A stretch of DNA of 64,000 nt from NCBI GenBank assembly GCA_950097015.1, contig CATNEN010000030.1, positions 4,712,001 through 4,776,000 of the forward strand, read 5' to 3'. Below the pieces are notes generated by a model. The model was given only the letters and a program-made list of their open reading frames with translations, had not been told where the DNA came from and did no database searches. Positions within the stretch are counted from its first letter, which is position 1, and the number at the start of each line of letters is the position of its first letter. The position numbers and the translations under genes were made by a program. This stretch comes from Macrostomum hystrix. Its lineage: Eukaryota > Animalia > Platyhelminthes. Positions 1 to 35,314 of this stretch are shown here, in pieces.

Positions 1-1589
1 CCAACAATACAACAGGGAACTGTGTTCAGTTCGCCACAGTTCCCTGTGTGTTAGCCCTCGGTGAGCACACAGTTCATCACTCGCGTAGCTTCCTGCGCCA
101 CTCGAGGGGACGCAGCAACTCCACTGGTACGTCGTCAGGTCCCGTAGCCTTGTTTATAATAAATTAAAAAAATATTATTAACTTAAGGCTCCACTGATGT
201 CGAACAAAAGAGCAGGAATTGTAAATCGTCACACTATACGAGCCTCTTAGTTTTGTTTTACGAGGCTTCACAGAGCCCATTATTAATGGCGACTGACTCC
301 TTTTAATTGATGATTCTACGCTCGTAAATGAAGCAACTCTTACGAAAGCAACTAAGCAACGAAAATATGCGAGGCCAGCAGGCAGGATTCTGAATAACTT
401 CTGTCTAGGGTTACTACTATTGTTTTATTTCATAGACTATTTTTTTATTTATACCATTTATTTTACATCGACAGCCTTTCTCTGAAGCACGTGAAGTACG
501 TGCGCTAACGTTCACCCTCAAGTGCACACTTTGAGGATCCCTCCTTGACCACTTTTTGCCAAAAAAAATTTTCTGTTATATAATTTTATTATACATTACT
601 TTATATAATTTTAGAATTTTTCTTTTTTATTTCATTACATTTACGAGCGTATATAATGAAATTTCTATTGCACTTATAATAATATTATTGTGTAATTATT
701 GCTACTCGTCATTTAGTTATTGTTATTTCCATTTTTATTAACAGCAATATTAATTTTTTTATTTATAGCCAAGTTTATTTTGAACTCTCGCTTCATAGGA
801 GTTTAAACCGCATCGTTTCCTGCATGGCAGCCGGGCCACTAAGCTGTTTGCGCTGCCATTCGGCTATATGTGGCCGCGGCGTCGCCTGGGTTTGCTGAAG
901 CTAAAGCTGTTCCTGTTTCTCCTACTAAGTCAATACAAGCTTCGAGCTGGCCAGGTTCCGACTGCACAGTCTAACGATGGCCTCCTTGGTGTTGAAATCC
1001 TACCTTGGACTGAAGATTTCGCCTTTGAGATCCAACCAAGGGGTTAAAAGGGCGCAACATTCACAAAATTAGTACCTGGACTACAATTGTACATATTCAA
1101 GCATATGTTTTGCTGCTTCAGGTTGACTCGCACAAGTGTATAAGTCCTTATTCTTCTTTTTTAGATAGTTTAAGCCGAATCGGATATTTTTCTTTGTAAT
1201 GTACTTTAGTGTCAAAATAGTTATTCATGCCTCTTTAACTTGTACATAATGAATGTATTTACCTACTTAACGTTTCTTTCTTTGGTACAGGGGAGCTACA
1301 GTTATTGGATTAGTCATTGTCATTTTGGTAATTTTTTAGCTATTTTGAATATCTGCAACGTTATTTCTCTTTAGAATAAAATTCAAATACATCTTTATGA
1401 TATTGCCTTGAATGGTGATAGACAAAAAACGGACTCTTGGAAAAGTAATGATCATGCGAAATGTTTAGAATAATGGCTTCTGTCGACATTGATCACTTTA
1501 TGGTGAACCCATCAAACTAGACGATGGAGCTCGACTTTTAAGCTTATTATTCTAATATGATAATATTAGATGGCCTTCCATATGCCACA

Positions 1590-12254: not shown

Positions 12255-13502
12255 CCCTAACCACCTGGAAAATGATGACTAGTTAGGTCGAAGTGCAGTC
12301 CGGAAAAATTGCCAACGAGGAGCGAAGCGAGCGTAGCTCCTCGTTGGCAATTTTTTCGGACAAACGAGACCGAGATAAGATTGCCCGGAGACTCCCCAAC
12401 GTAAAATCAACGTTTTAGAAACTAAAATTGATGCCGAATTAAAACTACTTGAGATGAAACCATGTGTGACCCCTCTATGGACGTAAAACATTTAGGGCTA
12501 CAAGATGAGCGACGTGAAATTTCCATAGCAACGCGTCTTGCGGTTGCCATGCAACGAAAAAGTGACTTTTCTGAGAGCCGTCGAAATCTTGAATCTCAAA
12601 AAATAAGGATTCACAATATACAGTCAAAAATTGATTGAACCCAACTTTTGGCAAATTTTCGGACCTATAAGACACTGATTGGTTATTTTCCGCTAAATGC
12701 TTACCTCGACAGGTAATTCTGTAAAAGTATGTTTTTCAAATGTCGAAAAATGTGCATTTTTTTCAACTTTCAACAGACGCAGCTCATATGTCGCGCGTCA
12801 GCGCGACCTATGAGCTGCGTCATACTTACGATGGCACCTGGGACTGTTACATGACGCACGACTTTAACCAAGATACTCACTTTAACTGTACATTAGCACC
12901 TGTTAATTACATTTGAATATTCGTCGGGTATTCGAACCAAAATAGAGGAAATTAAACCTTGTTGCGAGACTCTAAAAAGTACATGAATGCGGTCATTTAG
13001 GTAAGATCTACATGTTTATAATTCATTTTGAGCCGTTTCGGCGCATTGACTCTGAGCCATCCACTATACTAAAAATGAAATGCTTGCTTGGTTGGTTGCT
13101 TGGTTGCTTGTAATTGATTTTCTCCCGAACGGCTCAACCGATTTTCACCATTTCTTCACCAAAAGATGCCAAATATGGGGACAATTATACACGTATTTTT
13201 ATTAAGCTTAACTTTATTGCTAAGGGGATTAAGTATTCGAAAAACATTATTTTGTCAAAGGTCAAACCATCTTGGCCTATTGAGAATTTTACTCACTGCC
13301 ACTGAATTAGAATTGCATCGTCAAATTGCGCAACAACCCCTAGCTGATTGAATTTGAAGCCTGCACTCTGGAGACAAATTGGAAATAAATGTACACAACC
13401 AACCGCGAGACTGAGTGTACTCTATTTTCTTACTTCATTGTACAAAGCCAGAACTTTGAGAATTCATTTTATAAGGCTGATTTTTGCACCCACTAACCAA
13501 CA

Positions 13503-13574
13503 GTCGGAATAGCCGATGTGTAGGCACTAGGAATAGGTTATAGGCTAGGCTAGGGTTCGATTCTGCACTGCGTC
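13503..13574 (+). promoter_or_regulatory. tRNA(Leu/Ser)-like segment with Pol III A- and B-box-like motifs, repeated in each unit (also ~17856, 20992, 24128, 27264)
   Basis: GTCGGAATAGCCGATGTGT(A)AGGCACT...GGGTTCGATTC resembles tRNA-Leu GTCAGGATGGCCGAGCGGTCTAAGGCGCT...GGGTTCGAATC. The A-to-B spacing is tRNA-like, but there is no full cloverleaf. Confidence 0.5.
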
Positions 13575-13655
13575 AAATCATTTAGACTAATTTTCAGCCA
13601 GTAGTGATTGAAGATTATTTTGATTTTTTTTTCATTTCGTAAATAAAATATCATA

Positions 13656-15808
13656 AATCATAGCAAACCTGAGTTTGAATCATGGCAAAAATAGAGCTTG
13701 AATCATGGCTAAACCAGAGTTTGAATCATGGCTTAACCAGAGTTTGAATCATGGCTAAACCAGAGTCTGAATCATGGCTTAACCAGAATTTAAATCATGG
13801 CTAAACCAGAGTCTGAATCATGGCTTAACCAGAGTTTGAATCATGGCTAAACCAGAGTCTGAATCATGGCTTAACCAGAATTTAAATCATGGCTAAACCA
13901 GAGTCTGAATCATGGCTTAACCAGAGTCTGAATCATGGCTAAACCAGAGTCTGAATCATGGCTAAACTGGAGTCTGAATCATGGCTAAACCATAGTCTGA
14001 ATCATGGCTTAACCAGAGTTTGAATCATGGCTAAACCAGAGTCTGAATCATGGCTAAACCAGAGTCTGAATCATGGCTTAACCAGAGTCTGAATCATGGC
14101 TTAACCAGAGTTTGAATCATGGCTAAACCAGAGTCAGAATCATGGCTAAACCAGAGTCTGAATCATGGCTAAACCAGCGTCTGAATCATGGCTAAACCAG
14201 AGTTTGAATCATGGCTAAACCAGAGTTTGAATCATGGCTTAACCAGAGTTTGAATCATGGCTAAACCAGAGTCTGAATCATGGCTTAACCAGAATTTAAA
14301 TCATGGCTAAACCAGAGTCTGAATCATGGCTTAACCAGAGTCTGAATCATGGCTAAACCAGAGTCTGAATCATGGCTAAACTGGAGTCTGAATCATGGCT
14401 AAACCATAGTCTGAATCATGGCTTAACCAGAGTTTGAATCATGGCTAAACCAGAGTCTGAATCATGGCTAAACCAGAGTCTGAATCATGGCTTAACCAGA
14501 GTCTGAATCATGGCTTAACCAGAGTTTGAATCATGGCTAAACCAGAGTCAGAATCATGGCTAAACCAGAGTCTGAATCATGGCTAAACCAGCGTCTGAAT
14601 CATGGCTAAACCAGAGTTTGAATCATGGCTAAACCAGAGTTTGAATCATGGCTTAACCAGAGTTTGAATCATGGCTAAACCAGAGTCTGAATCATGGCTT
14701 AACCAGAATTTAAATCATGGCTAAACCAGAGTCTGAATCATGGCTTAACCAGAGTTTGAATCATGGCTAAACCAGAGTCTGAATCATGGCTTAACCAGAG
14801 TCTGAATCATGGCTTAACCAGAGTTTGAATCAAGGCTAAACCAGAGTCTGAATCATGGCTAAACCAGAGTCTGAATCATGGCTAAACCAGCGTCTGAATC
14901 ATGGCTAAACCAGAGTCTGAATCATTGCTAAACCAGAGTTTGAATCATGGCTTAACCAGAGTTTGAATCATTCTAAACCAGCGTTTGAATCATGGCTAAA
15001 CCAGAGTTTGAATCATGGCTAAACCAGAGTTTGAATCATGGCTAAACCAGCGTTTGAATCATGGCTAAACCAGAGTTTGAATCGTGGCTAAACCAGAGTT
15101 TGAATCATGGCTAAACCAGAGCTTAAATCATGGCTAAACCAGCGTCTGAATCATGGCTAAACCAGAGTCTGAATCATGGCAAAACCAGAGTCTGAATCAT
15201 GGCTAAACCAGCGTCTGAATCATGGCTTAACCAGAGTTTGAATCATGGCTTAACCAGAGTTTGAATCATGGCTAAACCAGAGTCTGAATCATGGCTAAAC
15301 CAGAGTTTAATTCATGGCTAAACAAGAGTCTGAATCATGGCTTAACCAGAGTTTGAATCATGGCTAAACCAGAGTTTGAATCATGGCTAAACCAGAGTTT
15401 GAATCATGGCTAAACCAGAGTCTGAATCATGGCTAAACCAACGTTTGAATCATGGCTAAACCAGAGTCTGAATCATGGCTAAACCAGAGTTTCAATCATG
15501 GCTAAACCAGCGTCTGAATCATGGCTAAACCAGCGTCTGAATCATAGCCAACCAGAGTTTGAATCTTGGCTAAACCAGAGTTTGAATCATAGCCAACCAG
15601 AGTCTGAATCATGGCAAAACGAGAGTTTGAATCATGGCTAAAGCAGACTTTAAATCATCACAGCGTCTGAATCATGGCTAAACCAGAGTTTGAATCATGG
15701 CTAAATTAGAGTTTGAATCATGGTAAAACGAGAGTTTGAATCATAGCCCACCAGGGTTTAAAACATGGCGAAACCTGAGTTTGAATCTTGGCTAACCCAG
15801 CGTTTGAA
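13656..15808 (+). repeat. 23-bp satellite (GAATCATGGCTAAACCAGAGTYT)n, unit 1
   Basis: Direct tandem repeats. An internal 414-bp (18-monomer) higher-order duplication is marked by CTGGAGTCTG near 13967 and 14381. Confidence 0.97.
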
Positions 15809-15811
15809 AAA

Positions 15812-17342
15812 TCAACGTCAACTGGGGAGTCATCATCAAAATGGGGATCAAGGTAAACTGGGGGATAATCGTCAACTGGAGGATCTTGGTAAACTGGGGG
15901 ATAATTGTCAACTGGGGGATCATTGTCAACTGGGGGATCGTTGTGAACTGGGGGATCATTGTAAACTAGGGGGTAATGGTCAACTGGGGGATAATTGTCA
16001 ACTGGGGAATCATCATCAAATGGGAGATCATGGTCAACTTGGGGATCATTGTCAACTGGGGGATCATTGTCAACTGTGGGATCATTGTCAACTGGGGGAT
16101 CATTGTCAAATGTGGGAACATTGTCAACTGGAGGAACATTGTTAACTGGGGATCATCATCAATGGGGAGACTTCATCAACTGGGGGATCATTGTGAACTG
16201 GGGGATCTTTGTTAACTGGGGGATCATTGTCAACTGGGGGATCATTCTCAACTGGGGGATCATTGTCAACTGGGGGATCATTGCAAACTGGGGGATCATT
16301 GTCAACTGGGGGATCATTTTCAACTGGGGGATCATCATCAACTGGGGGATCATTGTGAACTGGGGGATCTTTGTCAACTGGGGGATCATTGTCAACTGGG
16401 AGATCATTGTCAACTGGGGGATCGTTGTCAACTGGGGGAACTTCATTGTCAACTGGGGATCATTGTCAACTGGGGGATCATTGTCAACTGGGGGATCATC
16501 ATCAACTAGGGGATCATTGTCAACTGGGGGTTCATTGTCAACTGTGGTATCATTGTCAACCGGCGGGATCATTGTCAACTGTGGGATCATTGTCAACTGA
16601 GGGATCATTGTCAACTGGGGTATCATTGTCAACTGGGTGATCATCATCAACTGGGGGATCATTGTCAACTGGGGGAACATTGTCAACTGGAGGAACATTG
16701 TTAACTAGGGATCATCATCAATGGGGAGACTTCATCAACTGGGGGATCATTGTGAACTGGGGGATCTTTGTTAACTGGGGGATCATTGTCAACTGGGGGA
16801 TCATTCTCAACTGGGGGATCATTGTCTACTGGGGGATCATTGTCAACTGGGGGATCATTTTCAACTGGGGGATCATCATCAACTGGGGGATCATTGTCAA
16901 CTGGGGGATCATTGTCAACTTGGGGATCATTGTCAACTGTGGGATCATTGTCAACTGGGTGATCATCATCAACTGGGGGATCATTGATAACTGGGGGAAC
17001 ATTGTCAACTGGAGGAACATTGTTAACTGGGGATCATCATCAATAGGGAGACTTCATCAACTGGGGGATCATTGTGAATTGGGGGATCTTTGTTAACTGG
17101 GGGATCATTGTTAACTGGGGGATCATTCTCAACTGGGGGATCATTGTCAACTGGGGGATCATTCTCAACTGGGGGATCATCATCAACTGGGGGATCATCA
17201 TCAACTGGGGGATCATTGTGAACTGGGGGATCTTTGTCAACTGGGGGATCATTGTCAACTGGGGGTTCATTGTCAACTGGGGGTTCATTGTCAACTGGGG
17301 GATCATTGTCAACTGGGGGATCATTGTCAACTGGGGGTTCAT
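15812..17342 (+). repeat. 18-bp satellite (GGGGGATCATTGTCAACT)n, unit 1
   Basis: Direct tandem repeats. Confidence 0.97.
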
Positions 17343-18009
17343 AGTAGCTTTAAAAAGCTGTAAATTCAGCTTCTAAAAAGTCTATACTAGACGAATTAAA
17401 AGTATTTCTGCTCCCCGAAGGGGGGCAAATCTTGCTAGTCCACTATACTAAAAATGAAATGGTTGGTTGCTTGTAATTGATTTTCTCCCGAACGGCTCAA
17501 CCGATTTTCACCATTTCTTCACCAAAAGATGCTAAATATGGGGACAATTGTACACGTATTTTTATTAAGCTTAACTTTATTGCTAAGGGGATTAAATATT
17601 CGAAAAACATGATTTTTCAAAGGTCAAATTCAAAGGTCAAACCACTCACTGCCACTGAATTAGAATTGCATCGTCAAATTGCGCAACAACCCCTAGCTGA
17701 TTGAATTTGAAGCCTGCACTCTGGAGACAAATTGGAAATAAATGTACACAACCAACCGCGAGACTGAGTGTACTCTATTTTCTTACTTCATTGTACAAAG
17801 CCAGAACTTTGAGAATTCATTTTATAAGGCTGATTTCTGCACCCACTAACCAACAGTCGGAATAGCCGATGTGTAAGGCACTAGGAATAAGTTAGGCTAG
17901 GCTAGGGTTCGATTCTGCACTGCGTCAAATCATTTAGACTAATTTTCAGCCAGTAGTGATTGAAGATTATTTTGATTTATTTTTTTCATTTCGTAAATAA
18001 AATATCATA

Positions 18010-18944
18010 AATCATAGCAAACCTGAATTTGAATCATGGCAAAAATAGAGCTTGAATCATGGCTAAACCAGCGTCTGAATCATGGCTAAACCAGAGTCTG
18101 AATCATTGCTAAACCAGAGTTTGAATCATGGCTAAACCAGAGTTTGAATCATGGCTAAACCAGAGTTTGAATCATGGCTAAACCAGAGTTTGAATCATGG
18201 CTAAACCAGAGTTTGAATCATGGCTAAACCAGAGTCTGAATCATGGCTAAACCAGAGTTTGAATCATGGCTAAACCAGAGTCTGAATCATGGCTTAACCA
18301 GAGTTTGAATCATGGCTAAACCAGAGTTTGAATCATGGCTAAACCAGAGTCTGAATCATGGCTAAACCAGCGTCTGAATCATGGCTAAACCAGAGTTTGA
18401 ATCATGGCTAAACCAGAGTCTGAATCATGGCTTAACTAGAGTTTGAATCATGGCTAAACCAGAGTCTGAATCATGGCTAAAGCAGAGTTTGAATCATGGC
18501 TAAACCAGAGTCTGAATCATGGCTTAACCAGAGTTTGAATCATGGCTAAACCAGAGTTTGAATCATGGCTAAACCAGAGTTTGAATCATGGCTAAACCAG
18601 AGTCTGAATCATGGCTAAACCAGAGTTTCAATCATGGCTAAACCAGCGTCTGAATCATGGCTAAACCAGCGTCTGAATCATAGCCAACCAGAGTTTGAAT
18701 CTTGGCTAAACCAGAGTTTGAATCATAGCCAACCAGAGTCTGAATCATGGCAAAACGAGAGTTTGAATCATGGCTAAAGCAGACTTTAAATCATCACAGC
18801 GTCTGAATCATGGCTAAACCAGAGTTTGAATCATGGCTAAATTAGAGTTTGAATCATGGTAAAACGAGAGTTTGAATCATAGCCCACCAGGGTTTAAAAC
18901 ATGGCGAAACCTGAGTTTGAATCTTGGCTAACCCAGCGTTTGAA
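18010..18944 (+). repeat. 23-bp satellite, unit 2
   Basis: Direct tandem repeats. Confidence 0.97.
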
Positions 18945-18947
18945 AAA

Positions 18948-20478
18948 TCAACGTCAACTGGGGAGTCATCATCAAAATGGGGATCAAGGTAAACTGGGGG
19001 ATAATCGTCAACTGGAGGATCTTGGTAAACTGGGGGATAATTGTCAACTGGGGGATCATTGTCAACTGGGGGATCGTTGTGAACTGGGGGATCATTGTAA
19101 ACTAGGGGGTAATGGTCAACTGGGGGATAATTGTCAACTGGGGAATCATCATCAAATGGGGGATCATGGTCAACTTGGGGATCATTGTCAACTGGGGGAT
19201 CATTGTCAACTGTGGGATCATTGTCAACTGGGGGATCATTGTCAAATGTGGGAACATTGTCAACTGGAGGAACATTGTTAACTGGGGATCATCATCAATG
19301 GGGAGACTTCATCAACTGGGGGATCATTGTGAACTGGGGGATCTTTGTTAACTGGGGGATCATTGTCAACTGGGGGATCATTCTCAACTGGGGGATCATT
19401 GTCAACTGGGGGATCATTGCAAACTGGGGGATCATTGTCAACTGGGGGATCATTTTCAACTGGGGGATCATCATCAACTGGGGGATCATTGTGAACTGGG
19501 GGATCTTTGTCAACTGGGGGATCATTGTCAACTGGGAGATCATTGTCAACTGGGGGATCGTTGTCAACTGGGGGAACTTCATTGTCAACTGGGGATCATT
19601 GTCAACTGGGGGATCATTGTCAACTGGGGGATCATCATCAACTAGGGGATCATTGTCAACTGGGGGTTCATTGTCAACTGTGGTATCATTGTCAACCGGC
19701 GGGATCATTGTCAACTGTGGGATCATTGTCAACTGAGGGATCATTGTCAACTGGGGTATCATTGTCAACTGGGTGATCATCATCAACTGGGGGATCATTG
19801 TCAACTGGGGGAACATTGTCAACTGGAGGAACATTGTTAACTAGGGATCATCATCAATGGGGAGACTTCATCAACTGGGGGATCATTGTGAACTGGGGGA
19901 TCTTTGTTAACTGGGGGATCATTGTCAACTGGGGGATCATTCTCAACTGGGGGATCATTGTCTACTGGGGGATCATTGTCAACTGGGGGATCATTTTCAA
20001 CTGGGGGATCATCATCAACTGGGGGATCATTGTCAACTGGGGGATCATTGTCAACTGGGGGATCATTGTCAACTGTGGGATCATTGTCAACTGGGTGATC
20101 ATCATCAACTGGGGGATCATTGATAACTGGGGGAACATTGTCAACTGGAGGAACATTGTTAACTGGGGATCATCATCAATAGGGAGACTTCATCAACTGG
20201 GGGATCATTGTGAATTGGGGGATCTTTGTTAACTGGGGGATCATTGTTAACTGGGGGATCATTCTCAACTGGGGGATCATTGTCAACTGGGGGATCATTC
20301 TCAACTGGGGGATCATCATCAACTGGGGGATCATCATCAACTGGGGGATCATTGTGAACTGGGGGATCTTTGTCAACTGGGGGATCATTGTCAACTGGGG
20401 GTTCATTGTCAACTGGGGGTTCATTGTCAACTGGGGGATCATTGTCAACTGGGGGATCATTGTCAACTGGGGGTTCAT
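18948..20478 (+). repeat. 18-bp satellite, unit 2
   Basis: Direct tandem repeats. Confidence 0.97.
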
Positions 20479-21145
20479 AGTAGCTTTAAAAAGCTGTAAA
20501 TTCAGCTTCTAAAAAGTCTATACTAGACGAATTAAAAGTATTTCTGCTCCCCGAAGGGGGGCAAATCTTGCTAGTCCACTATACTAAAAATGAAATGGTT
20601 GGTTGCTTGTAATTGATTTTCTCCCGAACGGCTCAACCGATTTTCACCATTTCTTCACCAAAAGATGCTAAATATGGGGACAATTGTACACGTATTTTTA
20701 TTAAGCTTAACTTTATTGCTAAGGGGATTAAATATTCGAAAAACATGATTTTTCAAAGGTCAAATTCAAAGGTCAAACCACTCACTGCCACTGAATTAGA
20801 ATTGCATCGTCAAATTGCGCAACAACCCCTAGCTGATTGAATTTGAAGCCTGCACTCTGGAGACAAATTGGAAATAAATGTACACAACCAACCGCGAGAC
20901 TGAGTGTACTCTATTTTCTTACTTCATTGTACAAAGCCAGAACTTTGAGAATTCATTTTATAAGGCTGATTTCTGCACCCACTAACCAACAGTCGGAATA
21001 GCCGATGTGTAAGGCACTAGGAATAAGTTAGGCTAGGCTAGGGTTCGATTCTGCACTGCGTCAAATCATTTAGACTAATTTTCAGCCAGTAGTGATTGAA
21101 GATTATTTTGATTTATTTTTTTCATTTCGTAAATAAAATATCATA

Positions 21146-22080
21146 AATCATAGCAAACCTGAATTTGAATCATGGCAAAAATAGAGCTTGAATCATGGCT
21201 AAACCAGCGTCTGAATCATGGCTAAACCAGAGTCTGAATCATTGCTAAACCAGAGTTTGAATCATGGCTAAACCAGAGTTTGAATCATGGCTAAACCAGA
21301 GTTTGAATCATGGCTAAACCAGAGTTTGAATCATGGCTAAACCAGAGTTTGAATCATGGCTAAACCAGAGTCTGAATCATGGCTAAACCAGAGTTTGAAT
21401 CATGGCTAAACCAGAGTCTGAATCATGGCTTAACCAGAGTTTGAATCATGGCTAAACCAGAGTTTGAATCATGGCTAAACCAGAGTCTGAATCATGGCTA
21501 AACCAGCGTCTGAATCATGGCTAAACCAGAGTTTGAATCATGGCTAAACCAGAGTCTGAATCATGGCTTAACTAGAGTTTGAATCATGGCTAAACCAGAG
21601 TCTGAATCATGGCTAAAGCAGAGTTTGAATCATGGCTAAACCAGAGTCTGAATCATGGCTTAACCAGAGTTTGAATCATGGCTAAACCAGAGTTTGAATC
21701 ATGGCTAAACCAGAGTTTGAATCATGGCTAAACCAGAGTCTGAATCATGGCTAAACCAGAGTTTCAATCATGGCTAAACCAGCGTCTGAATCATGGCTAA
21801 ACCAGCGTCTGAATCATAGCCAACCAGAGTTTGAATCTTGGCTAAACCAGAGTTTGAATCATAGCCAACCAGAGTCTGAATCATGGCAAAACGAGAGTTT
21901 GAATCATGGCTAAAGCAGACTTTAAATCATCACAGCGTCTGAATCATGGCTAAACCAGAGTTTGAATCATGGCTAAATTAGAGTTTGAATCATGGTAAAA
22001 CGAGAGTTTGAATCATAGCCCACCAGGGTTTAAAACATGGCGAAACCTGAGTTTGAATCTTGGCTAACCCAGCGTTTGAA
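21146..22080 (+). repeat. 23-bp satellite, unit 3
   Basis: Direct tandem repeats. Confidence 0.97.
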
Positions 22081-22083
22081 AAA

Positions 22084-23614
22084 TCAACGTCAACTGGGGA
22101 GTCATCATCAAAATGGGGATCAAGGTAAACTGGGGGATAATCGTCAACTGGAGGATCTTGGTAAACTGGGGGATAATTGTCAACTGGGGGATCATTGTCA
22201 ACTGGGGGATCGTTGTGAACTGGGGGATCATTGTAAACTAGGGGGTAATGGTCAACTGGGGGATAATTGTCAACTGGGGAATCATCATCAAATGGGGGAT
22301 CATGGTCAACTTGGGGATCATTGTCAACTGGGGGATCATTGTCAACTGTGGGATCATTGTCAACTGGGGGATCATTGTCAAATGTGGGAACATTGTCAAC
22401 TGGAGGAACATTGTTAACTGGGGATCATCATCAATGGGGAGACTTCATCAACTGGGGGATCATTGTGAACTGGGGGATCTTTGTTAACTGGGGGATCATT
22501 GTCAACTGGGGGATCATTCTCAACTGGGGGATCATTGTCAACTGGGGGATCATTGCAAACTGGGGGATCATTGTCAACTGGGGGATCATTTTCAACTGGG
22601 GGATCATCATCAACTGGGGGATCATTGTGAACTGGGGGATCTTTGTCAACTGGGGGATCATTGTCAACTGGGAGATCATTGTCAACTGGGGGATCGTTGT
22701 CAACTGGGGGAACTTCATTGTCAACTGGGGATCATTGTCAACTGGGGGATCATTGTCAACTGGGGGATCATCATCAACTAGGGGATCATTGTCAACTGGG
22801 GGTTCATTGTCAACTGTGGTATCATTGTCAACCGGCGGGATCATTGTCAACTGTGGGATCATTGTCAACTGAGGGATCATTGTCAACTGGGGTATCATTG
22901 TCAACTGGGTGATCATCATCAACTGGGGGATCATTGTCAACTGGGGGAACATTGTCAACTGGAGGAACATTGTTAACTAGGGATCATCATCAATGGGGAG
23001 ACTTCATCAACTGGGGGATCATTGTGAACTGGGGGATCTTTGTTAACTGGGGGATCATTGTCAACTGGGGGATCATTCTCAACTGGGGGATCATTGTCTA
23101 CTGGGGGATCATTGTCAACTGGGGGATCATTTTCAACTGGGGGATCATCATCAACTGGGGGATCATTGTCAACTGGGGGATCATTGTCAACTGGGGGATC
23201 ATTGTCAACTGTGGGATCATTGTCAACTGGGTGATCATCATCAACTGGGGGATCATTGATAACTGGGGGAACATTGTCAACTGGAGGAACATTGTTAACT
23301 GGGGATCATCATCAATAGGGAGACTTCATCAACTGGGGGATCATTGTGAATTGGGGGATCTTTGTTAACTGGGGGATCATTGTTAACTGGGGGATCATTC
23401 TCAACTGGGGGATCATTGTCAACTGGGGGATCATTCTCAACTGGGGGATCATCATCAACTGGGGGATCATCATCAACTGGGGGATCATTGTGAACTGGGG
23501 GATCTTTGTCAACTGGGGGATCATTGTCAACTGGGGGTTCATTGTCAACTGGGGGTTCATTGTCAACTGGGGGATCATTGTCAACTGGGGGATCATTGTC
23601 AACTGGGGGTTCAT
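22084..23614 (+). repeat. 18-bp satellite, unit 3
   Basis: Direct tandem repeats. Confidence 0.97.
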
Positions 23615-24281
23615 AGTAGCTTTAAAAAGCTGTAAATTCAGCTTCTAAAAAGTCTATACTAGACGAATTAAAAGTATTTCTGCTCCCCGAAGGGGGGCAA
23701 ATCTTGCTAGTCCACTATACTAAAAATGAAATGGTTGGTTGCTTGTAATTGATTTTCTCCCGAACGGCTCAACCGATTTTCACCATTTCTTCACCAAAAG
23801 ATGCTAAATATGGGGACAATTGTACACGTATTTTTATTAAGCTTAACTTTATTGCTAAGGGGATTAAATATTCGAAAAACATGATTTTTCAAAGGTCAAA
23901 TTCAAAGGTCAAACCACTCACTGCCACTGAATTAGAATTGCATCGTCAAATTGCGCAACAACCCCTAGCTGATTGAATTTGAAGCCTGCACTCTGGAGAC
24001 AAATTGGAAATAAATGTACACAACCAACCGCGAGACTGAGTGTACTCTATTTTCTTACTTCATTGTACAAAGCCAGAACTTTGAGAATTCATTTTATAAG
24101 GCTGATTTCTGCACCCACTAACCAACAGTCGGAATAGCCGATGTGTAAGGCACTAGGAATAAGTTAGGCTAGGCTAGGGTTCGATTCTGCACTGCGTCAA
24201 ATCATTTAGACTAATTTTCAGCCAGTAGTGATTGAAGATTATTTTGATTTATTTTTTTCATTTCGTAAATAAAATATCATA

Positions 24282-25216
24282 AATCATAGCAAACCTGAAT
24301 TTGAATCATGGCAAAAATAGAGCTTGAATCATGGCTAAACCAGCGTCTGAATCATGGCTAAACCAGAGTCTGAATCATTGCTAAACCAGAGTTTGAATCA
24401 TGGCTAAACCAGAGTTTGAATCATGGCTAAACCAGAGTTTGAATCATGGCTAAACCAGAGTTTGAATCATGGCTAAACCAGAGTTTGAATCATGGCTAAA
24501 CCAGAGTCTGAATCATGGCTAAACCAGAGTTTGAATCATGGCTAAACCAGAGTCTGAATCATGGCTTAACCAGAGTTTGAATCATGGCTAAACCAGAGTT
24601 TGAATCATGGCTAAACCAGAGTCTGAATCATGGCTAAACCAGCGTCTGAATCATGGCTAAACCAGAGTTTGAATCATGGCTAAACCAGAGTCTGAATCAT
24701 GGCTTAACTAGAGTTTGAATCATGGCTAAACCAGAGTCTGAATCATGGCTAAAGCAGAGTTTGAATCATGGCTAAACCAGAGTCTGAATCATGGCTTAAC
24801 CAGAGTTTGAATCATGGCTAAACCAGAGTTTGAATCATGGCTAAACCAGAGTTTGAATCATGGCTAAACCAGAGTCTGAATCATGGCTAAACCAGAGTTT
24901 CAATCATGGCTAAACCAGCGTCTGAATCATGGCTAAACCAGCGTCTGAATCATAGCCAACCAGAGTTTGAATCTTGGCTAAACCAGAGTTTGAATCATAG
25001 CCAACCAGAGTCTGAATCATGGCAAAACGAGAGTTTGAATCATGGCTAAAGCAGACTTTAAATCATCACAGCGTCTGAATCATGGCTAAACCAGAGTTTG
25101 AATCATGGCTAAATTAGAGTTTGAATCATGGTAAAACGAGAGTTTGAATCATAGCCCACCAGGGTTTAAAACATGGCGAAACCTGAGTTTGAATCTTGGC
25201 TAACCCAGCGTTTGAA
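24282..25216 (+). repeat. 23-bp satellite, unit 4
   Basis: Direct tandem repeats. Confidence 0.97.
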
Positions 25217-25219
25217 AAA

Positions 25220-26750
25220 TCAACGTCAACTGGGGAGTCATCATCAAAATGGGGATCAAGGTAAACTGGGGGATAATCGTCAACTGGAGGATCTTGGTAA
25301 ACTGGGGGATAATTGTCAACTGGGGGATCATTGTCAACTGGGGGATCGTTGTGAACTGGGGGATCATTGTAAACTAGGGGGTAATGGTCAACTGGGGGAT
25401 AATTGTCAACTGGGGAATCATCATCAAATGGGGGATCATGGTCAACTTGGGGATCATTGTCAACTGGGGGATCATTGTCAACTGTGGGATCATTGTCAAC
25501 TGGGGGATCATTGTCAAATGTGGGAACATTGTCAACTGGAGGAACATTGTTAACTGGGGATCATCATCAATGGGGAGACTTCATCAACTGGGGGATCATT
25601 GTGAACTGGGGGATCTTTGTTAACTGGGGGATCATTGTCAACTGGGGGATCATTCTCAACTGGGGGATCATTGTCAACTGGGGGATCATTGCAAACTGGG
25701 GGATCATTGTCAACTGGGGGATCATTTTCAACTGGGGGATCATCATCAACTGGGGGATCATTGTGAACTGGGGGATCTTTGTCAACTGGGGGATCATTGT
25801 CAACTGGGAGATCATTGTCAACTGGGGGATCGTTGTCAACTGGGGGAACTTCATTGTCAACTGGGGATCATTGTCAACTGGGGGATCATTGTCAACTGGG
25901 GGATCATCATCAACTAGGGGATCATTGTCAACTGGGGGTTCATTGTCAACTGTGGTATCATTGTCAACCGGCGGGATCATTGTCAACTGTGGGATCATTG
26001 TCAACTGAGGGATCATTGTCAACTGGGGTATCATTGTCAACTGGGTGATCATCATCAACTGGGGGATCATTGTCAACTGGGGGAACATTGTCAACTGGAG
26101 GAACATTGTTAACTAGGGATCATCATCAATGGGGAGACTTCATCAACTGGGGGATCATTGTGAACTGGGGGATCTTTGTTAACTGGGGGATCATTGTCAA
26201 CTGGGGGATCATTCTCAACTGGGGGATCATTGTCTACTGGGGGATCATTGTCAACTGGGGGATCATTTTCAACTGGGGGATCATCATCAACTGGGGGATC
26301 ATTGTCAACTGGGGGATCATTGTCAACTGGGGGATCATTGTCAACTGTGGGATCATTGTCAACTGGGTGATCATCATCAACTGGGGGATCATTGATAACT
26401 GGGGGAACATTGTCAACTGGAGGAACATTGTTAACTGGGGATCATCATCAATAGGGAGACTTCATCAACTGGGGGATCATTGTGAATTGGGGGATCTTTG
26501 TTAACTGGGGGATCATTGTTAACTGGGGGATCATTCTCAACTGGGGGATCATTGTCAACTGGGGGATCATTCTCAACTGGGGGATCATCATCAACTGGGG
26601 GATCATCATCAACTGGGGGATCATTGTGAACTGGGGGATCTTTGTCAACTGGGGGATCATTGTCAACTGGGGGTTCATTGTCAACTGGGGGTTCATTGTC
26701 AACTGGGGGATCATTGTCAACTGGGGGATCATTGTCAACTGGGGGTTCAT
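25220..26750 (+). repeat. 18-bp satellite, unit 4
   Basis: Direct tandem repeats. Confidence 0.97.
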
Positions 26751-27417
26751 AGTAGCTTTAAAAAGCTGTAAATTCAGCTTCTAAAAAGTCTATACTAGAC
26801 GAATTAAAAGTATTTCTGCTCCCCGAAGGGGGGCAAATCTTGCTAGTCCACTATACTAAAAATGAAATGGTTGGTTGCTTGTAATTGATTTTCTCCCGAA
26901 CGGCTCAACCGATTTTCACCATTTCTTCACCAAAAGATGCTAAATATGGGGACAATTGTACACGTATTTTTATTAAGCTTAACTTTATTGCTAAGGGGAT
27001 TAAATATTCGAAAAACATGATTTTTCAAAGGTCAAATTCAAAGGTCAAACCACTCACTGCCACTGAATTAGAATTGCATCGTCAAATTGCGCAACAACCC
27101 CTAGCTGATTGAATTTGAAGCCTGCACTCTGGAGACAAATTGGAAATAAATGTACACAACCAACCGCGAGACTGAGTGTACTCTATTTTCTTACTTCATT
27201 GTACAAAGCCAGAACTTTGAGAATTCATTTTATAAGGCTGATTTCTGCACCCACTAACCAACAGTCGGAATAGCCGATGTGTAAGGCACTAGGAATAAGT
27301 TAGGCTAGGCTAGGGTTCGATTCTGCACTGCGTCAAATCATTTAGACTAATTTTCAGCCAGTAGTGATTGAAGATTATTTTGATTTATTTTTTTCATTTC
27401 GTAAATAAAATATCATA

Positions 27418-30400
27418 AATCATAGCAAACCTGAATTTGAATCATGGCAAAAATAGAGCTTGAATCATGGCTAAACCAGCGTCTGAATCATGGCTAAACC
27501 AGAGTCTGAATCATTGCTAAACCAGAGTTTGAATCATGGCTAAACCAGAGTTTGAATCATGGCTAAACCAGAGTTTGAATCATGGCTAAACCAGAGTTTG
27601 AATCATGGCTAAACCAGAGTTTGAATCATGGCTAAACCAGAGTCTGAATCATGGCTAAACCAGAGTTTGAATCATGGCTAAACCAGAGTCTGAATCATGG
27701 CTTAACCAGAGTTTGAATCATGGCTAAACCAGAGTTTGAATCATGGCTAAACCAGAGTCTGAATCATGGCTAAACCAGCGTCTGAATCATGGCTAAACCA
27801 GAGTTTGAATCATGGCTAAACCAGAGTCTGAATCATGGCTTAACTAGAGTTTGAATCATGGCTAAACCAGAGTCTGAATCATGGCTAAACCAGCGTCTGA
27901 ATCATGGCTAAAGCAGAGTTTGAATCATGGCTAAACCAGAGTCTGAATCATGGCTTAACCAGAGTTTGAATCATGGCTAAACCAGAGTTTGAATCATGGC
28001 TAAACCAGAGTTTGAATCATGGCTAAACCAGAGTTTGAATCATGGCTAAACCAGAGTTTGAGTCATGGCTAAACCAGAGTCTGAATCATGGCTAAACCAA
28101 CGTTTGAATCATGGCTAACCTAGAGTCTGAATCATGGCTAAACCATAGTCTGAATCATTGCTAAAATAGAGTCTGAATCATGGCTAAACCAGAGTCTGAA
28201 TCATGGCTAAACCAGAGTCTGAATCATGGCTAAACTAGAGTCTGAATCATGGCTAAACCAGAGTCTGAATCATGGCTAAACTAGAGTCTGAATCATGGCT
28301 AAACCAGAGTTTGAACCATGGCTAAACCAGAGTTTGAATCATGGCTAAACCAGCGTCTGAATCATGGCTAAACCAGCGTCTGAATCATGGCTAAACCAGA
28401 GTTTGAATCATGGCTAAACCAGAGTCTGAATATTGGCAACACCAGAGTTTGAATCATGGCTAAACCAGCGTCTGAATCATGGCTAAAGCAGAGTTTGAAT
28501 CATGGCTAAACCAGAGTCTGAATCATGGCTTAACCAGAGTTTGAATCATGGCTAAACCAGAGTTTGAATCATGGCTAAACCAGAGTTTGAATCATGGCTA
28601 AACCAGAGTTTGAATCATGGCTAAACCAGAGTTTGAGTCATGGCTAAACCAGAGTCTGAATCATGGCTAAACCAACGTTTGAATCATGGCTAACCTAGAG
28701 TCTGAATCATGGCTAAACCATAGTCTGAATCATTGCTAAAATAGAGTCTGAATCATGGCTAAACCAGAGTCTGAATCATGGCTAAACCAGAGTCTGAATC
28801 ATGGCTAAACTAGAGTCTGAATCATGGCTAAACCAGAGTCTGAATCATGGCTAAACTAGAGTCTGAATCATGGCTAAACCAGAGTTTGAACCATGGCTAA
28901 ACCAGAGTTTGAATCATGGCTAAACCAGCGTCTGAATCATGGCTAAACCAGCGTCTGAATCATGGCTAAACCAGAGTTTGAATCATGGCTAAACCAGAGT
29001 TTGAATATTGGCAACACCAGAGTTTGAATCATGGCTAAACCAGCGTCTGAATCATGGCTAAACCAGAGTTTGAATCATGGCTAAACCAGAGACTAAATCA
29101 TGGCTAAACCATCATCATCAGCATGGCTAAACTAGAGTTTGAATCATGGCTAAACCATCATCATCAGCATGGCTAAACTAGAGTTTGAATCATGGCTAAA
29201 CCAGAGTTTGAATAATGGCTACACCAGAGTTTGAATAATGGCTAAACCAGATCTTGAATCATGGCTAAACTAGAGTTTGAATCATGGCTAAACCAGAGTC
29301 TGAATCATGGCTAAACCAGCGTCTGAATCATGGCTAAAGCAGAGTTTGAATCATGGCTAAACCAGAGTCTGAATCATGGCTTAACCAGAGTTTGAATCAT
29401 GGCTAAACCAGAGTTTGAATCATGGCTAAACCAGAGTTTGAATCATGGCTAAACCAGATCTTGAATCATGGCTAAACTAGAGTTTGAATCATGGCTAAAC
29501 CAGAGTCTGAATCATGGCTAAACCAGCGTCTGAATCATGGCTAAACCAGAGTTTGAATCATGGCTAAACCAGAGTCTGAATCATGGCTTAACCAGAGTTT
29601 GAATCATGGCTAAGCCAGAGTTTGAATCATGGCTAAACCAGAGTTTGAATCATGGCTAAACCAGATCTTGAATCATGGCTAAACTAGAGTTTGAATCTTG
29701 GCTAAACCAGAGTCTGAATCATGGCTAAACCAGCGTCTGAATCATGGCTAAAGCAGAGTTTGAATCATGGCTAAACCAGAGTCTGAATCATGGCTAAACC
29801 AGAGTCTGAATCATGGCTAAACCAGAGTTTGAATCATGGCTAAACCAGAGTTTGAATCATGGCTTAACCAGAGTTTGAATCATGGCTAAACCAGAGTTTG
29901 AATCATGGCTAAACCAGAGTTTGAATCATGGCTAAACCAGAGTTTGAATCATGGCTAAACCAGAGTTTGAGTCATGGCTAAACCAGAGTCTGAATCATGG
30001 CTAAACCAACGTTTGAATCATGGCTAACCTAGAGTCTGAATCATGGCTAAACCATAGTCTGAATCATTGCTAAAATAGAGTCTGAATCATGGCTAAACCA
30101 GAGTTTGAATCATGGCTAAACCAGATCTTGAATCATGGCTAAACTAGAGTTTGAATCATGGCTAAACCAGAGTCTGAATCATGGCTAAACCAGCGTCTGA
30201 ATCATGGCTAAAGCAGAGTTTGAATCATGGCTAAACCAGAGTCTGAATCATGGCTAAACCAGAGTCGGAATCATGGCTAAACCAGAGTTTGAATCATGGC
30301 TAAACCAGAGTTTGAATCATGGCTTAACCAGAGTTTGAATCATGGCTAAACCAGAGTTTGAATCATGGCTAAACCAGAGTTTGAATCATGGCTAAACCAG

Positions 30401-31463
30401 AGTTTGAATCATGGCTAAACCAGAGTTTGAGTCATGGCTAAACCAGAGTCTGAATCATGGCTAAACCAACGTTTGAATCATGGCTAACCTAGAGTCTGAA
30501 TCATGGCTAAACCATAGTCTGAATCATTGCTAAAATAGAGTCTGAATCATGGCTAAACCAGAGTCTGAATCATGGCTAAACCAGAGTCTGAATCATGGCT
30601 AAACTAGAGTCTGAATCATGGCTAAACCAGAGTCTGAATCATGGCTAAACTAGAGTCTGAATCATGGCTAAACCAGAGTTTGAACCATGGCTAAACCAGA
30701 GTTTGAATCATGGCTAAACCAGCGTCTGAATCATGGCTAAACCAGCGTCTGAATCATGGCTAAACCAGAGTTTGAATCATGGCTAAACCAGAGTTTGAAT
30801 ATTGGCAACACCAGAGTTTGAATCATGGCTAAACCAGCGTCTGAATCATGGCTAAACCAGAGTTTGAATCATGGCTAAACCAGAGACTAAATCATGGCTA
30901 AACCATCATCATCAGCATGGCTAAACTAGAGTTTGAATCATGGCTAAACCATCATCATCAGCATGGCTAAACTAGAGTTTGAATCATGGCTAAACCAGAG
31001 TTTGAATAATGGCTACACCAGAGTTTGAATCATGGCTAAACCAGAGTCTGAATCATGGCTAAACTAGAGTTTGAATCATGGCTAAACCAGAGTTTGAATA
31101 ATGGCTACACCAGAGTTTGAATCATGGCTAAACCAGAGTCTGAATCATGGCTAAACCAGAGTTTGAATCTTGGCTAAACCAGAGTTTCAATCATGGCTAA
31201 CCCAGCGTTTGAATCATGGCTAAACCAGAGTTTGAATCATGGCAAAAACCGAGTTTCAATCATGGCTAACCCAGCGTTTGAATCATGGCTAAACCAGAGT
31301 TTGAATCATAGCCAACCAGAGTTTGAATCTTGGCTAAACCAGAGTTTGAATCATAGCCAACCAGAGTCTGAATCATGGCAAAACGAGAGTTTGAATCATA
31401 GCCCACCAGGGTTTAAAACATGGCGAAACCTGAGTTTGAATCTTGGCTAACCCAGCGTTTGAA
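27418..31463 (+). repeat. 23-bp satellite, unit 5 (~4 kb, with higher-order repeats)
   Basis: Variant TTTGAGTCATGG at 28060/28635 (575 bp = 25 monomers) and 29969/30429 (460 bp = 20 monomers). Confidence 0.97.
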
Positions 31464-31466
31464 AAA

Positions 31467-32725
31467 TCAACGTCAACTGGGGAGTCATCATCAAAATGGG
31501 GATCATGGTGAACTGGGGGATCATGGTAAACTGGGGGATAATTGTCGACTGGGGGATCATTGTCAACTGGGGGATCATTGTCAACTGGGGGATCATTGTC
31601 AACTGGGGGATCATTGTCAACTGGGGGATCATTGTCAAATGGGGGATCATTGTCAACTGGGGGATCTTTGTCAACTGGGGGTTCATTGTCAACTGGGGGT
31701 TCATTGTCAACTGGGGGATCATTGTCAACTGGGGGATCATTGTGAACTGAGAGATCATTGTCAACTGGGGGGTAATGGTCAACTGGGGGATAATTGTCAA
31801 CTGGGGAATCATCATCAACTGGGGATCATCATCAACTGGGGGATCATTGAGAACTGGGGGATCTTTGTCAACTGGGGGATCATTGTGAACTGGGGGATCT
31901 TTGTCAACTGGGGGATCATTGTATACTGTGGGATCATTGTCAACTGGGGGATCATTGTCAACTGGGGGATCATTGTCAACTGGGGGATCGTTGTCAACTG
32001 GGGGATCATTGTCAACTGGGGGAACATTGTCAACTGGAGGAACATTGTTAACTAGGGATCATCATCAATGGGGAGACTTCATCAACTGGGGGACCATTGT
32101 GAACTGGGGGATCTTTGTTAACTGGGGGATCATTGTCAACTGGGGGATCATTCTCAACTGGGGGATCATTGTCAACTGGGGGATCATTTTCAACTGGGGG
32201 ATCATCATCAACTGGAGGATCATTGTCAACTGGGGGATCATTGTCAACTGGGGGATCATTGTCAACTGGGGGATCATTGTCAACTGGGTGATCATCATCA
32301 ACTGGGGGATCATTGTCAACTGGGGGAACATTGTCAAATGGAGGAACATTGTTAACTGGGGATCATCATCAATGGGGAGACTTCATCAACTGGGGGATCA
32401 TTGTGAACTGGGGGATCTTTGTTAACTGGGGGATCATTGTCAACTGGGGGATCATTGTCAACTGGGGGATCATTTTCAACTGGGGGATCATCATCAACTG
32501 GGGGATCATCATCAACTGGGTGATCATTGTGAACTGGGGGATCTTTGTCAACTGGGGGATCATTGTCAACTGTGGGATCATTGTCAACTGGGGGATCATT
32601 GTCAAATGGGGGATCATTGTCAACTGGGGGATCGTTGTCAACTGGGGGTTCATTGTCAACTGGGGGTTCATTGTCAACTGGGGGATCATTGTCAACTGGG
32701 GGATCATTGTCAACTGGGGGTTCAT
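31467..32725 (+). repeat. 18-bp satellite, unit 5 (variant order differs from units 1-4)
   Basis: Direct tandem repeats. Confidence 0.97.
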
Positions 32726-33480
32726 TGTAGCTTTAAAAAGCTGTAAATTCAGCTGCTACAAAGTATATACTAGACGAATTAAAAGTATTTCTGCTCTCCG
32801 AAGGGGGGCAAAACTTGCTAGTACACTGCTAAAGTCGAAAAACGTGATTTAGGCTATTTTTATGCATTTTTTATGATACAAATGTACAAAAAATAAGAAA
32901 CGACGACATGCTAGGAAAATCGGAATTTTTAGGCAAAGTGCACAACTAAATTGCGCACAATATGTATATCTTGAAATTTCGTCTTAGTTTATTGAAGTCG
33001 TTGCCGGTACGGAAATGTACTTTAACGACAGTACGGGGGACTTGCATACCGAACATACTTTTTAGCCTGTAACTTTTGAGCGGATTACCGGAGCGCGGCG
33101 TGCTTGGTGTCATTGAACTACATTTTTGATGTAATTTTATTTGAGTGTATGTTCGCTGTCATTGCACGATGTTTTGTACACCTCAGGCCAGGTCACGTGA
33201 CTTGCTGGAAATGAAATAATGACTTTGTACCTATACGAAGGATAGGGGAAGCATAAGAATGAGCCAAAATTTGTACTTATTAGAAACATCTAGATGACTG
33301 CTCTCAGAAAAAGTGACATTCACGTCTGTCAGTTGCAAAATTTAATTGACTGTCAAAGTTACCGTGTGCAGTGCACCCAATTACCGTGTGCAGTTCAAAA
33401 GCTGCATTCCATAAAAAAACTTTGGTTTTCACAGAGAGCGGTCAAAGTCGAATGCTGCTGTCAGCGACGACTCCGAACGG

Positions 33481-33690
33481 GGGGCGGCTGCTGCTAGCGC
33501 GGCGAGCGAATTTTGCAACCCCAACCAAGGGGCGGCTGCTGCTAGCGCGGCGAGCGACTTTTGCAACCCCAACCAAGGGGCGGCTGCTGCTAGCGCGGCG
33601 AGCGACTTTTGCAACCCCAACCAAGGGGCGGCTGCTGCTAGCGCGGCGAGCGACTTTTGCAACCCCAAACCAAGGGGCGGCTGTTGCTGG
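33481..33690 (+). repeat. 48-bp GC-rich minisatellite, ~4.3 copies
   Basis: GGGGCGGCTGCTGCTAGCGCGGCGAGCGACTTTTGCAACCCCAACCAA repeated. Confidence 0.95.
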
Positions 33691-35314
33691 CGCTGCTGCC
33701 GCTACCAGCGCTAACGATATTGAGAGGGGGCTGGTCGGGAAGGCCAGTAGCTGCAGCTGACTGTTAAACGGGGCTTCATCTCGCTGCTTTTATATATTTT
33801 TATTAATTAAAACTAAAGTACTTGTCTTCGTTCCTCGAACCCAGTTTCTGTTTAAGGCAGTGTTTTCACAGTGTACTCTTTAAGCACTCTTAAGTACTCT
33901 GGTACTCTTTAAGGGCGTAGCAATAGAGTACTCTGGTATTCTTTTAAAGTGCGTACTTTAAAGTAGGCAAGTACTTTTTAAAGTGCAACGCATTTCAGTC
34001 TGTCATCATTAATCCTAATTTTGTACTATATGAAAATCTCAATAATCGCTGGTACTCGTGCATTAGTACATACTCGCAACGTAAAATTAGTATATTTATT
34101 ATATGCATTTTATGCTTTGTGAATAACAAATATGTTCGGTCCCATTAATTATATCGTACGTACTGAAGTAACGCAACATCAAAATTATAAATTAATTTAG
34201 TATTTAAATATTATGTTCCAACCTGTCCATCCTGGTGATTCGAGTTGAATAACTGAGCATTTTAATTAATTAAAGATTAATATATATGGTAACGTGGCTT
34301 GATGGCACCACTCGTGTGTGTCTGCCCGTTCGTGTTGTTGCATGTACAAAACAAGTGCGGTTTTGGATAAAATCTGGATCATCTTTCCTTTAATTATCTG
34401 TTTACGTTTTTTGACAGGTGGGCATATGTAGATAGATCTCCTACTGTCTCTCTCACTCTCCGATTCTCCGCGCTCCCTCCCGCTGTTTTAATTTTGTTTA
34501 TTTTGTTCCCTAATAAAAACAAAAATTCACCCTCTCCCACAGGCTGTGACTGTGGGTCCCACATTCGGCTGTCAGTCAGTCAAGGAGATATTAGCGCTCA
34601 TCAAGATTTTGATACAGGAGTCAATGATGCAGTAGTCTGCTCTATTAAAGTGCTTCAGTGAGTATCCTCAGTACAAAGGCCGCTAAGTTTTGGAATATTT
34701 ATTAAGTTTTTTGTTCATTTTATTGGGTGACATGATCAGAAGTAAAAAATAATTCGAAATATTAAGCAATATTAATGCACTTCGACCTGCTAAGGTGGCA
34801 CACCTTCAATCTAGTTTAGGCACTAAATGTTCTAGACAAGGATTACTTAACTATCCATTCCTTTTGTTTTTTTATCACTTTTTTCAGATAAACTTTTTTC
34901 AAAGGTGACATACCGTTACTGTGCTCTTTATGTTTTGTGTTTGAATTGATTACGTCTAGCTAAAGTGCAAAAAATTAAATATGATTTCTCGGAAATCGAT
35001 GTGTTTACTAGCATTTTACGCGATGCAAGCGGAATAGTCAAATACAGGACAACGACCAATTCATTTTGGTTCTTACTAACAAGGATTAAAGGAATAAAAA
35101 TTGTTAATTAAAATTTATACTTGTACGGTCTTACCTTAAAATGTTTTTATAATAATTGTTGTAAAAATGTATTAATGCAAAACTAAAACCTAATGTTGAT
35201 ATTACATTTTGCTTAGAAAATCAATAAATCAATTAAATAAATCAATTAAATGTGTAGCTTTATTTCGTGAATTACTTGTGTGGTGTAAACTATTTATCGA
35301 AGCTCAGGAATATA

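Follow-up and report, generated by a model that had tools for sequence, protein, structure and literature searches.

Tandem Helitrons are usually taken as the footprint of rolling-circle replication. Head-to-tail arrays of these transposons are reported from plants, bats and Drosophila (PMC5876387; 10.1101/2021.06.02.446622), and in the oyster the non-autonomous rolling-circle element Cg_HINE_11_12 carries two consecutive arrays of unrelated monomers (PMC7492417). Here, we describe a head-to-tail train of Helitrons with two minisatellite arrays per unit from the flatworm Macrostomum hystrix (assembly GCA_950097015.1, contig CATNEN010000030.1, positions 4,712,001 to 4,776,000). This stretch of 64,000 nucleotides, G000:C30:4712001-4776000 in our notation, is called the window in the following, all positions are window positions, and the genome amounts to 220 Mb in 42 contigs. 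At this locus the history of a Helitron train is legible base by base, and it points to two hits on one nucleotide followed by ordinary unequal crossover. A first-pass annotation, made from the letters of the window, had read the train as five Helitrons, each delivering two different satellites and carrying an RNA polymerase III (Pol III)-type promoter, and had not recognised this architecture; two abutting unrelated arrays are already known from Cg_HINE_11_12.

Five units in the same orientation fill positions 13060-32821, 19,762 bp in total, and they are joined exactly by CTAG|TC with zero intervening bases. An A precedes the TC at the left edge of the array at 13060, the units end with CTAG at 17438, 20574, 23710, 26846 and 32821, the TC of the next unit abuts at 17439, 20575, 23711 and 26847, and a T at 32822 follows the last CTAG. 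All junctions named in the first-pass annotation were recovered, with its coordinates marking the G of CTAG. The units measure 4379, 3136, 3136, 3136 and 5975 bp, and each consists of a body of 571-596 bp, an array of 23-bp monomers, an array of 18-bp monomers and a tail of 93-96 bp containing a hairpin and the terminal CTAG. Tandem Repeats Finder (TRF) assigns 94, 41, 41, 41 and 176 copies of the 23-mer and 85, 85, 85, 85 and 70 copies of the 18-mer to units 1 to 5; the fixed order of segments proposed earlier is thereby confirmed for body, arrays and tail in all five units, and its tRNA-like segment has to be dropped, as discussed below. All units open with TCCACTATACTAAAAATG, and near the 3' end of each lies a GC-rich hairpin with an 8-bp stem and a 3-nt loop, 11 nt before the terminus (folding z = -2.0 for the 40-mer and -2.9 for the 96-nt tail). 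Unit 1 (13060-17438, + strand), read as a founder from subfamily A, comprises the body at 13060-13655, the 23-bp array at 13656-15808, the 18-bp array at 15817-17342 and the tail at 17343-17438, with the hairpin at 17409-17427 and CTAG at 17435-17438. In unit 5 (26847-32821, + strand), read as a founder from subfamily B, the corresponding segments lie at 26847-27417, 27418-31463, 31472-32728 and 32729-32821, and the hairpin stem of its tail carries a C>T change. A GCTT/GGTT microsatellite at 13081-13110, 24 nt inside the body, is found at the same place in other copies and is the chief length variable of the 5' body among them (column conservation 0.56).

The termini identify the class of the elements. 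The 5' TC is present in all five units and in a sixth copy within the window, 26 of 26 sampled copies start with TCCACTATAC, and the 3' CTAG, in agreement with the CTRR rule, ends all units and 31 of 31 sampled 3' ends, so that the ends postulated earlier are indeed shared by other members of the family. In unit 2, no inverted pair joining both ends was found, i.e., there are no terminal or subterminal inverted repeats, and a classification as Helentron was rejected on this ground. Because the units combine a 5' TC, a hairpin, a 3' CTAG, the lack of terminal inverted repeats and precise A|T insertion without duplication, they are canonical, non-autonomous Helitrons (Helitron1-type). A first-look search of the genome returned about 670 body candidates and about 570 tail candidates; since the genome contains hundreds of further occurrences of both the 23-nt 5' end and the 3' tail, a chance origin of the ends is excluded.

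Information on how the train arose comes from comparing its units with each other. Units 2 (17439-20574), 3 (20575-23710) and 4 (23711-26846), all on the + strand, differ at 0 of 3136 positions. Anchored on the left, positions 1-1043 of unit 2, which include the body and 472 bp of the 23-bp array, equal unit 5 with 0 mismatches; anchored on the right, positions 1141-3136 match unit 1 except for 2 mismatches, and this segment comprises what remains of the 23-bp array together with the entire 18-bp array and the tail. The switch therefore falls within the 23-bp array, in a crossover zone at 18482-18578 (+ strand) that is repeated at +3136 and +6272 in units 3 and 4. Given the assembly, a single recombinant between units 5 and 1 is present three times, as units 2-4, and the five Helitrons of the first-pass annotation are not five events. 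The identity of these chimeras is the reason for assuming a founder of two units and unequal crossover in the 23-bp array.

The two outer units are clearly distinct. Between units 1 and 5, the bodies show 14 mismatches and 31 gap positions, the tails 5 differences in 93 positions and the 18-bp arrays 99 mismatches and 283 gap positions, and a tree of 27 bodies places them in different clades (21/577 differences). The body of unit 5 differs at 1 of 579 positions from L005 and L006, both on contig C29, and that of unit 1 at 7 of 577 from L028. Moreover, the 18-bp array of unit 1 (1526 bp) aligns to that of L032 (C38:26.25 Mb) without gaps at 99.87% identity (2 mismatches in 1500 bp), and for the 18-bp array and tail of unit 5 the identity to L012 (C38:10.95 Mb) is 99.7% (4 mismatches in 1350 bp, the arrays again being ungapped). 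These two loci are unlinked and have different neighbours. As units 1 and 5 fall into different clades and possess near-identical partners at unlinked loci, they are neither sister copies made on the spot nor parts of a single-element concatemer; from their sequences they look like separate insertions. Within the outer units, blocks of several monomers are duplicated at 100% identity, namely 414 bp in unit 1 and 460, 575, 1794 and 2369 bp in unit 5. No regular higher-order period was found in the arrays, in which the ungapped autocorrelation drifts with insertions and deletions and local scans detect irregular block duplications only. A satellite with a regular higher-order repeat was thus rejected, and the intermediate block level suggested earlier persists in the form of irregular, 100%-identical duplications of several monomers, not as a regular period.

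The array sits inside a copy of a dispersed repeat of about 1.3 kb, which includes the 400 bp flanking it on either side. Its left part (12278-13059, + strand), which ends with ...CTGAGCCA, is 91-93% identical to paralogous copies by blastn, and its right part (32822-33343, + strand) is 94-96% identical to them. By coordinates, 26 other copies of this host repeat are contiguous across the site; 18 of them were read, and all 18 empty sites have the sequence ...CTGAGCCA|TACACTGCTAAAGTCG, i.e., ...GAGCCA|TACACTGCTAAAG. Because the empty paralogous sites read directly contiguous, the whole block of 19,762 bp occupies one A|T site without target duplication or deletion, and the A|T targeting assumed before is borne out at this locus by 18 sites reading ...CCA|TAC.... 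The 13 positions adjoining the 3' end of the array (32822-32834, + strand) hold TACACTGCTAAAG, i.e., T, six bases and CTAAA, as in 18 of 18 empty sites read. Adjoining one of the empty copies, an open reading frame (ORF) with a P-element transposase-like helix-turn-helix domain (PF12017) was observed at L070:93-899 (+), and the host repeat itself may be a deletion derivative of a P-element-like transposon.

This sequence next to the 3' end recurs throughout the family. T is the next base after each of the 31 sampled family 3' ends, and genome-wide 492 exact family 3' ends are followed by T vs about 16-21 by another base among the ends listed, several of the latter probably being chance 13-mers. 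Of the 492 flanks, 375 (76%) read T-N3-11-CTAA, and in the non-Helitron DNA of the window the background amounts to 4.6-6.6% of A|T sites with CTAA in the next 18 nt. Spacings and classes of the flanks were tallied by eye in the first 100 rows listed: the commonest distance from T to CTAA is 6, followed by 7 and then 8, and the first 100 motif-bearing flanks comprise 23 with the family's own 5' end, 23 with 5' ends of related Helitrons (e.g., TCTAATATACTAA and TTATATACTAA) and about 54 of other kind. With Helitron starts set aside, roughly 60% of the flanks still contain the motif. The host site TACACTGCTAAAG and the element start TCCACTATACTAAAAATG share the pattern, with a spacing of 8 in the element start. 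Furthermore, L073 (C39:14928655), another copy of the host repeat, carries an insertion at the very nucleotide used in the window and reads ...CATGCTAG|TACATTGCTAAAG. The element found there comes from a different subfamily and has arrays of 24 copies (23-mer) and 37 copies (18-mer). If insertion were blind to sequence, the probability of two hits coinciding in this way is estimated at the order of 1 in 10,000, based on about 30 host copies, about 700 elements and 220 Mb. Two further matches, at C14:1283047 and C2:4783354, cover the right flank of the host repeat only. These observations suggest that Helitrons of this flatworm select their sites by an extended, oriented motif downstream of the cut, consisting of T, 6-8 nt and CTAAA, which resembles the first 14 nt of their own 5' ends, and that trains arise by serial site-specific integration; we place this joint reading slightly above even. 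The same protein surface might then read both the 5' end and the target. In the accessible parts of the Helitron literature, only an AT (or TT) dinucleotide rule is described and no such downstream motif was found.

Taken together, we consider it probable that the block goes back to two founder insertions at one site and subsequently grew by unequal crossover. Units 1 and 5, as different members of the family, would have integrated separately at the same nucleotide, the choice of which would be made by the motif downstream of the cut, a T and CTAA(A) 6-8 nt later. An insertion would leave this motif intact beside the new 3' end, and the element 5' end TCCACTATACTAAAAATG would offer it as well. 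Since the motif survives the insertion and the 5' end of the resident mimics it, an occupied site would stay a good target, and a second hit would create an exact CTAG|TC joint. If the assembly is taken at face value, the next step can be read from the units themselves: an unequal crossover between the 23-bp arrays of unit 5 and unit 1 on two chromatids would have produced the order unit 1, chimera, unit 5, and more misaligned exchange at the 3136-bp period would have raised the chimera to three identical copies. The large block duplications within the arrays may have been made by the same process.

Trains are not confined to this locus. Genome-wide, 83 exact joints between members of the family were counted, and many joints to other Helitron families occur in both directions, which therefore go beyond a concatemer of a single element, as this cannot produce them. 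On contig C14, a two-element period of 8710 bp is repeated three times. A mini-Helitron of about 345 bp, with its own hairpin GGCTACCCAGAGGGTAGC and a CTAG end, forms arrays in which the whole element is the monomer (L013:1-1650, L029:1910-3579 and further genome-wide matches). Its joints vary from unit to unit, reading CTAG|TAATATAC..., CTAG|TCTTCTAATATAC... or CTAG|TCTATCTAATATAC...; some lack the TC (CTAG|TAATATAC) and others contain stacked TCT/TCTA pieces. Such variable joints would result from serial integration near resident starts and are not expected from a concatemer or from simple unequal exchange. If serial integration at the motif is true, the joints of the satellite-carrying family would be exact since the only suitably placed T is the first base of the element, and the mini-Helitron would form TC-less joints (CTAG|TAATATACTAAAAATG) since its third base is a T at the preferred spacing. 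Arrays of the mini-Helitron often abut the 5' end of the satellite-carrying family.

Other explanations for the train have to be weighed against these data. In a rolling-circle concatemer, a circular intermediate or a failed 3' termination would yield a multimer that integrates once. This would place the whole block in one site, as observed; Helraiser circles are closed by the same CTAG|TC joint, and rolling-circle replication is the common explanation given for tandem arrays (PMC5876387; 10.1101/2021.06.02.446622; PMC12001565). However, a concatemer of one element gives equal units, whereas the outer units here belong to different subfamilies with very different arrays and each has a 99.7-99.9% identical partner elsewhere, the middle units are recombinants of the outer two, and joints between different families are common in the genome; we regard this origin as unlikely. 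An assembly artefact, either a wrong copy number of the 3136-bp units or a chimera created by mis-joining two 23-bp arrays, is suggested by the 0 differences across 9408 bp and by the poor assembly of long, identical, minisatellite-rich repeats. Yet with 42 contigs for 220 Mb the assembly was probably made from long reads, single ones of which could cover 9.4 kb, similar structures such as that on C14 exist at other loci, and a simple mis-join would not leave both outer units intact in a clean tandem or create the two private differences from unit 1, which makes an artefact improbable. Five independent insertions, one per unit, would agree with the complete ends of every unit and with a family that does strike the same spot repeatedly, but units 2-4 are mutually identical and exact mosaics of their neighbours that switch within the 23-bp array, and three transpositions of a unit that is a mosaic of both its neighbours are far less likely than local unequal exchange, so that this explanation is hardly credible. 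Among the 100%-identity matches outside the locus there is no free 3136-bp chimera, and the 5' body alone was matched.

Several points weigh against two founder insertions guided by a target motif. The identical 3136-bp units may have been miscounted in the assembly, and a pre-formed dimer of a unit 1-like and a unit 5-like element might have been copied in one piece through a skipped 3' end. Either founder may have landed first; the younger-looking unit 5 lies on the 3' side, which fits a re-use of the host motif and not a landing on the start of the resident. An A precedes the 5' end in 45 of 100 5' flanks outside trains (counted by eye), which is looser than the classical A|T rule, and the tallies of spacings and classes cover the first 100 rows and not all 375 to 492. 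Moreover, the RepHel partners of the family are candidates proposed from their coordinates. Many solitary 5' ends are preceded by extra TCC, (ATCC)n or TCT/TCTTCT pieces, e.g., CATCCATCCATCCATCC|TCCACT, which could be leftovers of earlier insertions or result from imprecise 5' cleavage.

A further proposal concerns the body of the element, which the first-pass annotation had credited with a tRNA-like segment and a Pol III-type promoter and which would thus turn the element into a transcribed cassette resembling a short interspersed nuclear element. The only trace of this segment is a B-box-like GGTTCGATTCT at 13554-13564 (+ strand), which matches the consensus at 10 of 11 positions and is accompanied by a weak A-box-like stretch about 45 nt upstream; such a B-box-like match is estimated to be expected by chance about 0.1 times per body of 600 bp, i.e., it lies about at chance level. 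ARAGORN detects no tRNA in the element, and Rfam gave no tRNA match either, whether with the gathering threshold, with E<=10 for the body of this copy or with E<=1 for 19 other copies. The body is conserved throughout (95-100%), so that conservation of the claimed region is uninformative. A tRNA-derived promoter is accordingly very improbable, and we have abandoned this part of the earlier description.

The satellites, on the other hand, behave as cargo of the family. In 26 of 26 sampled copies the body is followed by the 23-bp array, in 26 of 27 sampled tails the 18-bp array precedes the tail, and both arrays occur in the same order wherever they are short enough to be viewed together; co-occurrence in fixed order holds in these samples. 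The idea of satellite delivery is likewise upheld by the ungapped matches of the 18-bp arrays described above: because these arrays are near-identical at unlinked loci, they travel as cargo of the element, and copying leaves the succession of their monomer variants unchanged. Long minisatellite arrays can thus transpose almost unchanged, with 2-4 differences in 1.35-1.5 kb, and the locus directly documents that a canonical Helitron has dispersed satellites in a flatworm. ORFs of 201-211 amino acids in the 18-bp array were considered as coding and rejected, as they are a read-through of the 18-nt period with peptide repeats such as NDPPVD and not genes.

Enzymes that might mobilise the family were looked for among Rep and helicase domains. 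The genome contains 67 Helitron_like_N matches with open frames of up to 1840 amino acids, and 4 of these matches (C1:10780544, C7:6741448, C1:16406556 and C29:5629316) lie 2.8-4.6 kb downstream of family 5' ends on the same strand, as judged by coordinates alone. Two Rep-domain matches with 1840-amino acid frames at G000:C38:19325762 and 19332186, 6.4 kb apart on the same strand, may represent two autonomous Helitrons in tandem. At L039 (C25:4277113-4280208), a PIF1-type helicase fragment (PF05970 and Pif1 2B domain) is located on the minus strand about 240 bp past a family 3' end, on the same strand as the latter; the fragment probably belongs to a truncated autonomous Helitron that forms the following member of the train, and as such a neighbour it was rejected as autonomous partner of the family.

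Within the window, the sixth copy of the family (62713-62925, + strand) has an A|TC start and is shortened, being cut at about 62925 by a Tc1/mariner-type element. It holds a (TGGT)17 microsatellite at 62734-62803, and the interrupting element contains a minus-strand ORF (62993-63823) with a mariner-type DDE transposase domain (PF01359/PF13358). Two further tandem repeats are unrelated to the Helitron, a GC-rich 48-bp repeat just beyond the host repeat (33481-33693, 4.4 copies, 97% matches) and a 228-bp repeat at 2492-3176 (3 copies, 98% matches). Open frames with a cadherin domain (7513-8181, - strand) and with an M28 peptidase domain (56649-58151, - strand) indicate that the train is set among ordinary host genes.

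The array itself is a tidy example of an already known kind, and the part that we consider new is the extended target motif mimicking the 5' end of the element. If this reading is true, head-to-tail trains, including those of mixed families, would be built by serial site-specific integration and not as rolling-circle concatemers, every resident 5' end would be a target, and the motif would survive each insertion. It would give a simple reason for one-way Helitron trains and for the change from transposon to satellite at three scales, i.e., monomer, block and whole element. Helibat and Helraiser of bats resemble the flatworm family in their 5' TC, their 3' CTAG and a hairpin placed about 11 nt ahead of the 3' terminus as well as in A-to-T insertion without target duplication and in head-to-tail arrays (PMC4778049; PMC5876387). 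In contrast, the preference reported for Helraiser is the AT dinucleotide, with no downstream motif seen described in the available portion of that report (PMC4778049), whereas 76% of the 3' flanks of the flatworm family carry CTAA 6-8 nt past the T and an A precedes under half of its tallied solitary 5' ends; the host, a flatworm, and the cargo of two minisatellites differ from both bat elements as well. The oyster Cg_HINE elements are likewise non-autonomous rolling-circle elements with a central satellite-like array, and the arrays of Cg_HINE_11_12 are fixed in orientation and dispersed through the genome (PMC7492417), but they are Helentrons with subterminal inverted repeats and oligo-T targets, while the flatworm family has TC/CTAG ends without inverted repeats. 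DINE-TR1/DINE-1 of Drosophila and Heli2Xen of Xenopus also belong to the Helitron superfamily and contain internal tandem repeats able to seed satellites (PMC4067079; PMC12001565); they differ in belonging to the Helentron/Helitron2 lineage and in carrying one repeat type with monomers of about 150-166 bp instead of two short minisatellites. Helitron-1_DPe on the Y of Drosophila pseudoobscura similarly shows tens of head-to-tail Helitron junctions in one genome, which are attributed to rolling-circle replication, and the available part of that study describes no dissection of heterodimer and recombinant and no target motif (10.1101/2021.06.02.446622). The double-insertion model of McGurk and Barbash, in which site preference leads to tandem dimers that expand by unequal exchange, shares the same logic (10.1101/158386); its evidence came from short reads and concerned other classes of Drosophila transposons, whereas here the founder pair and its recombinant are legible in one Helitron locus.

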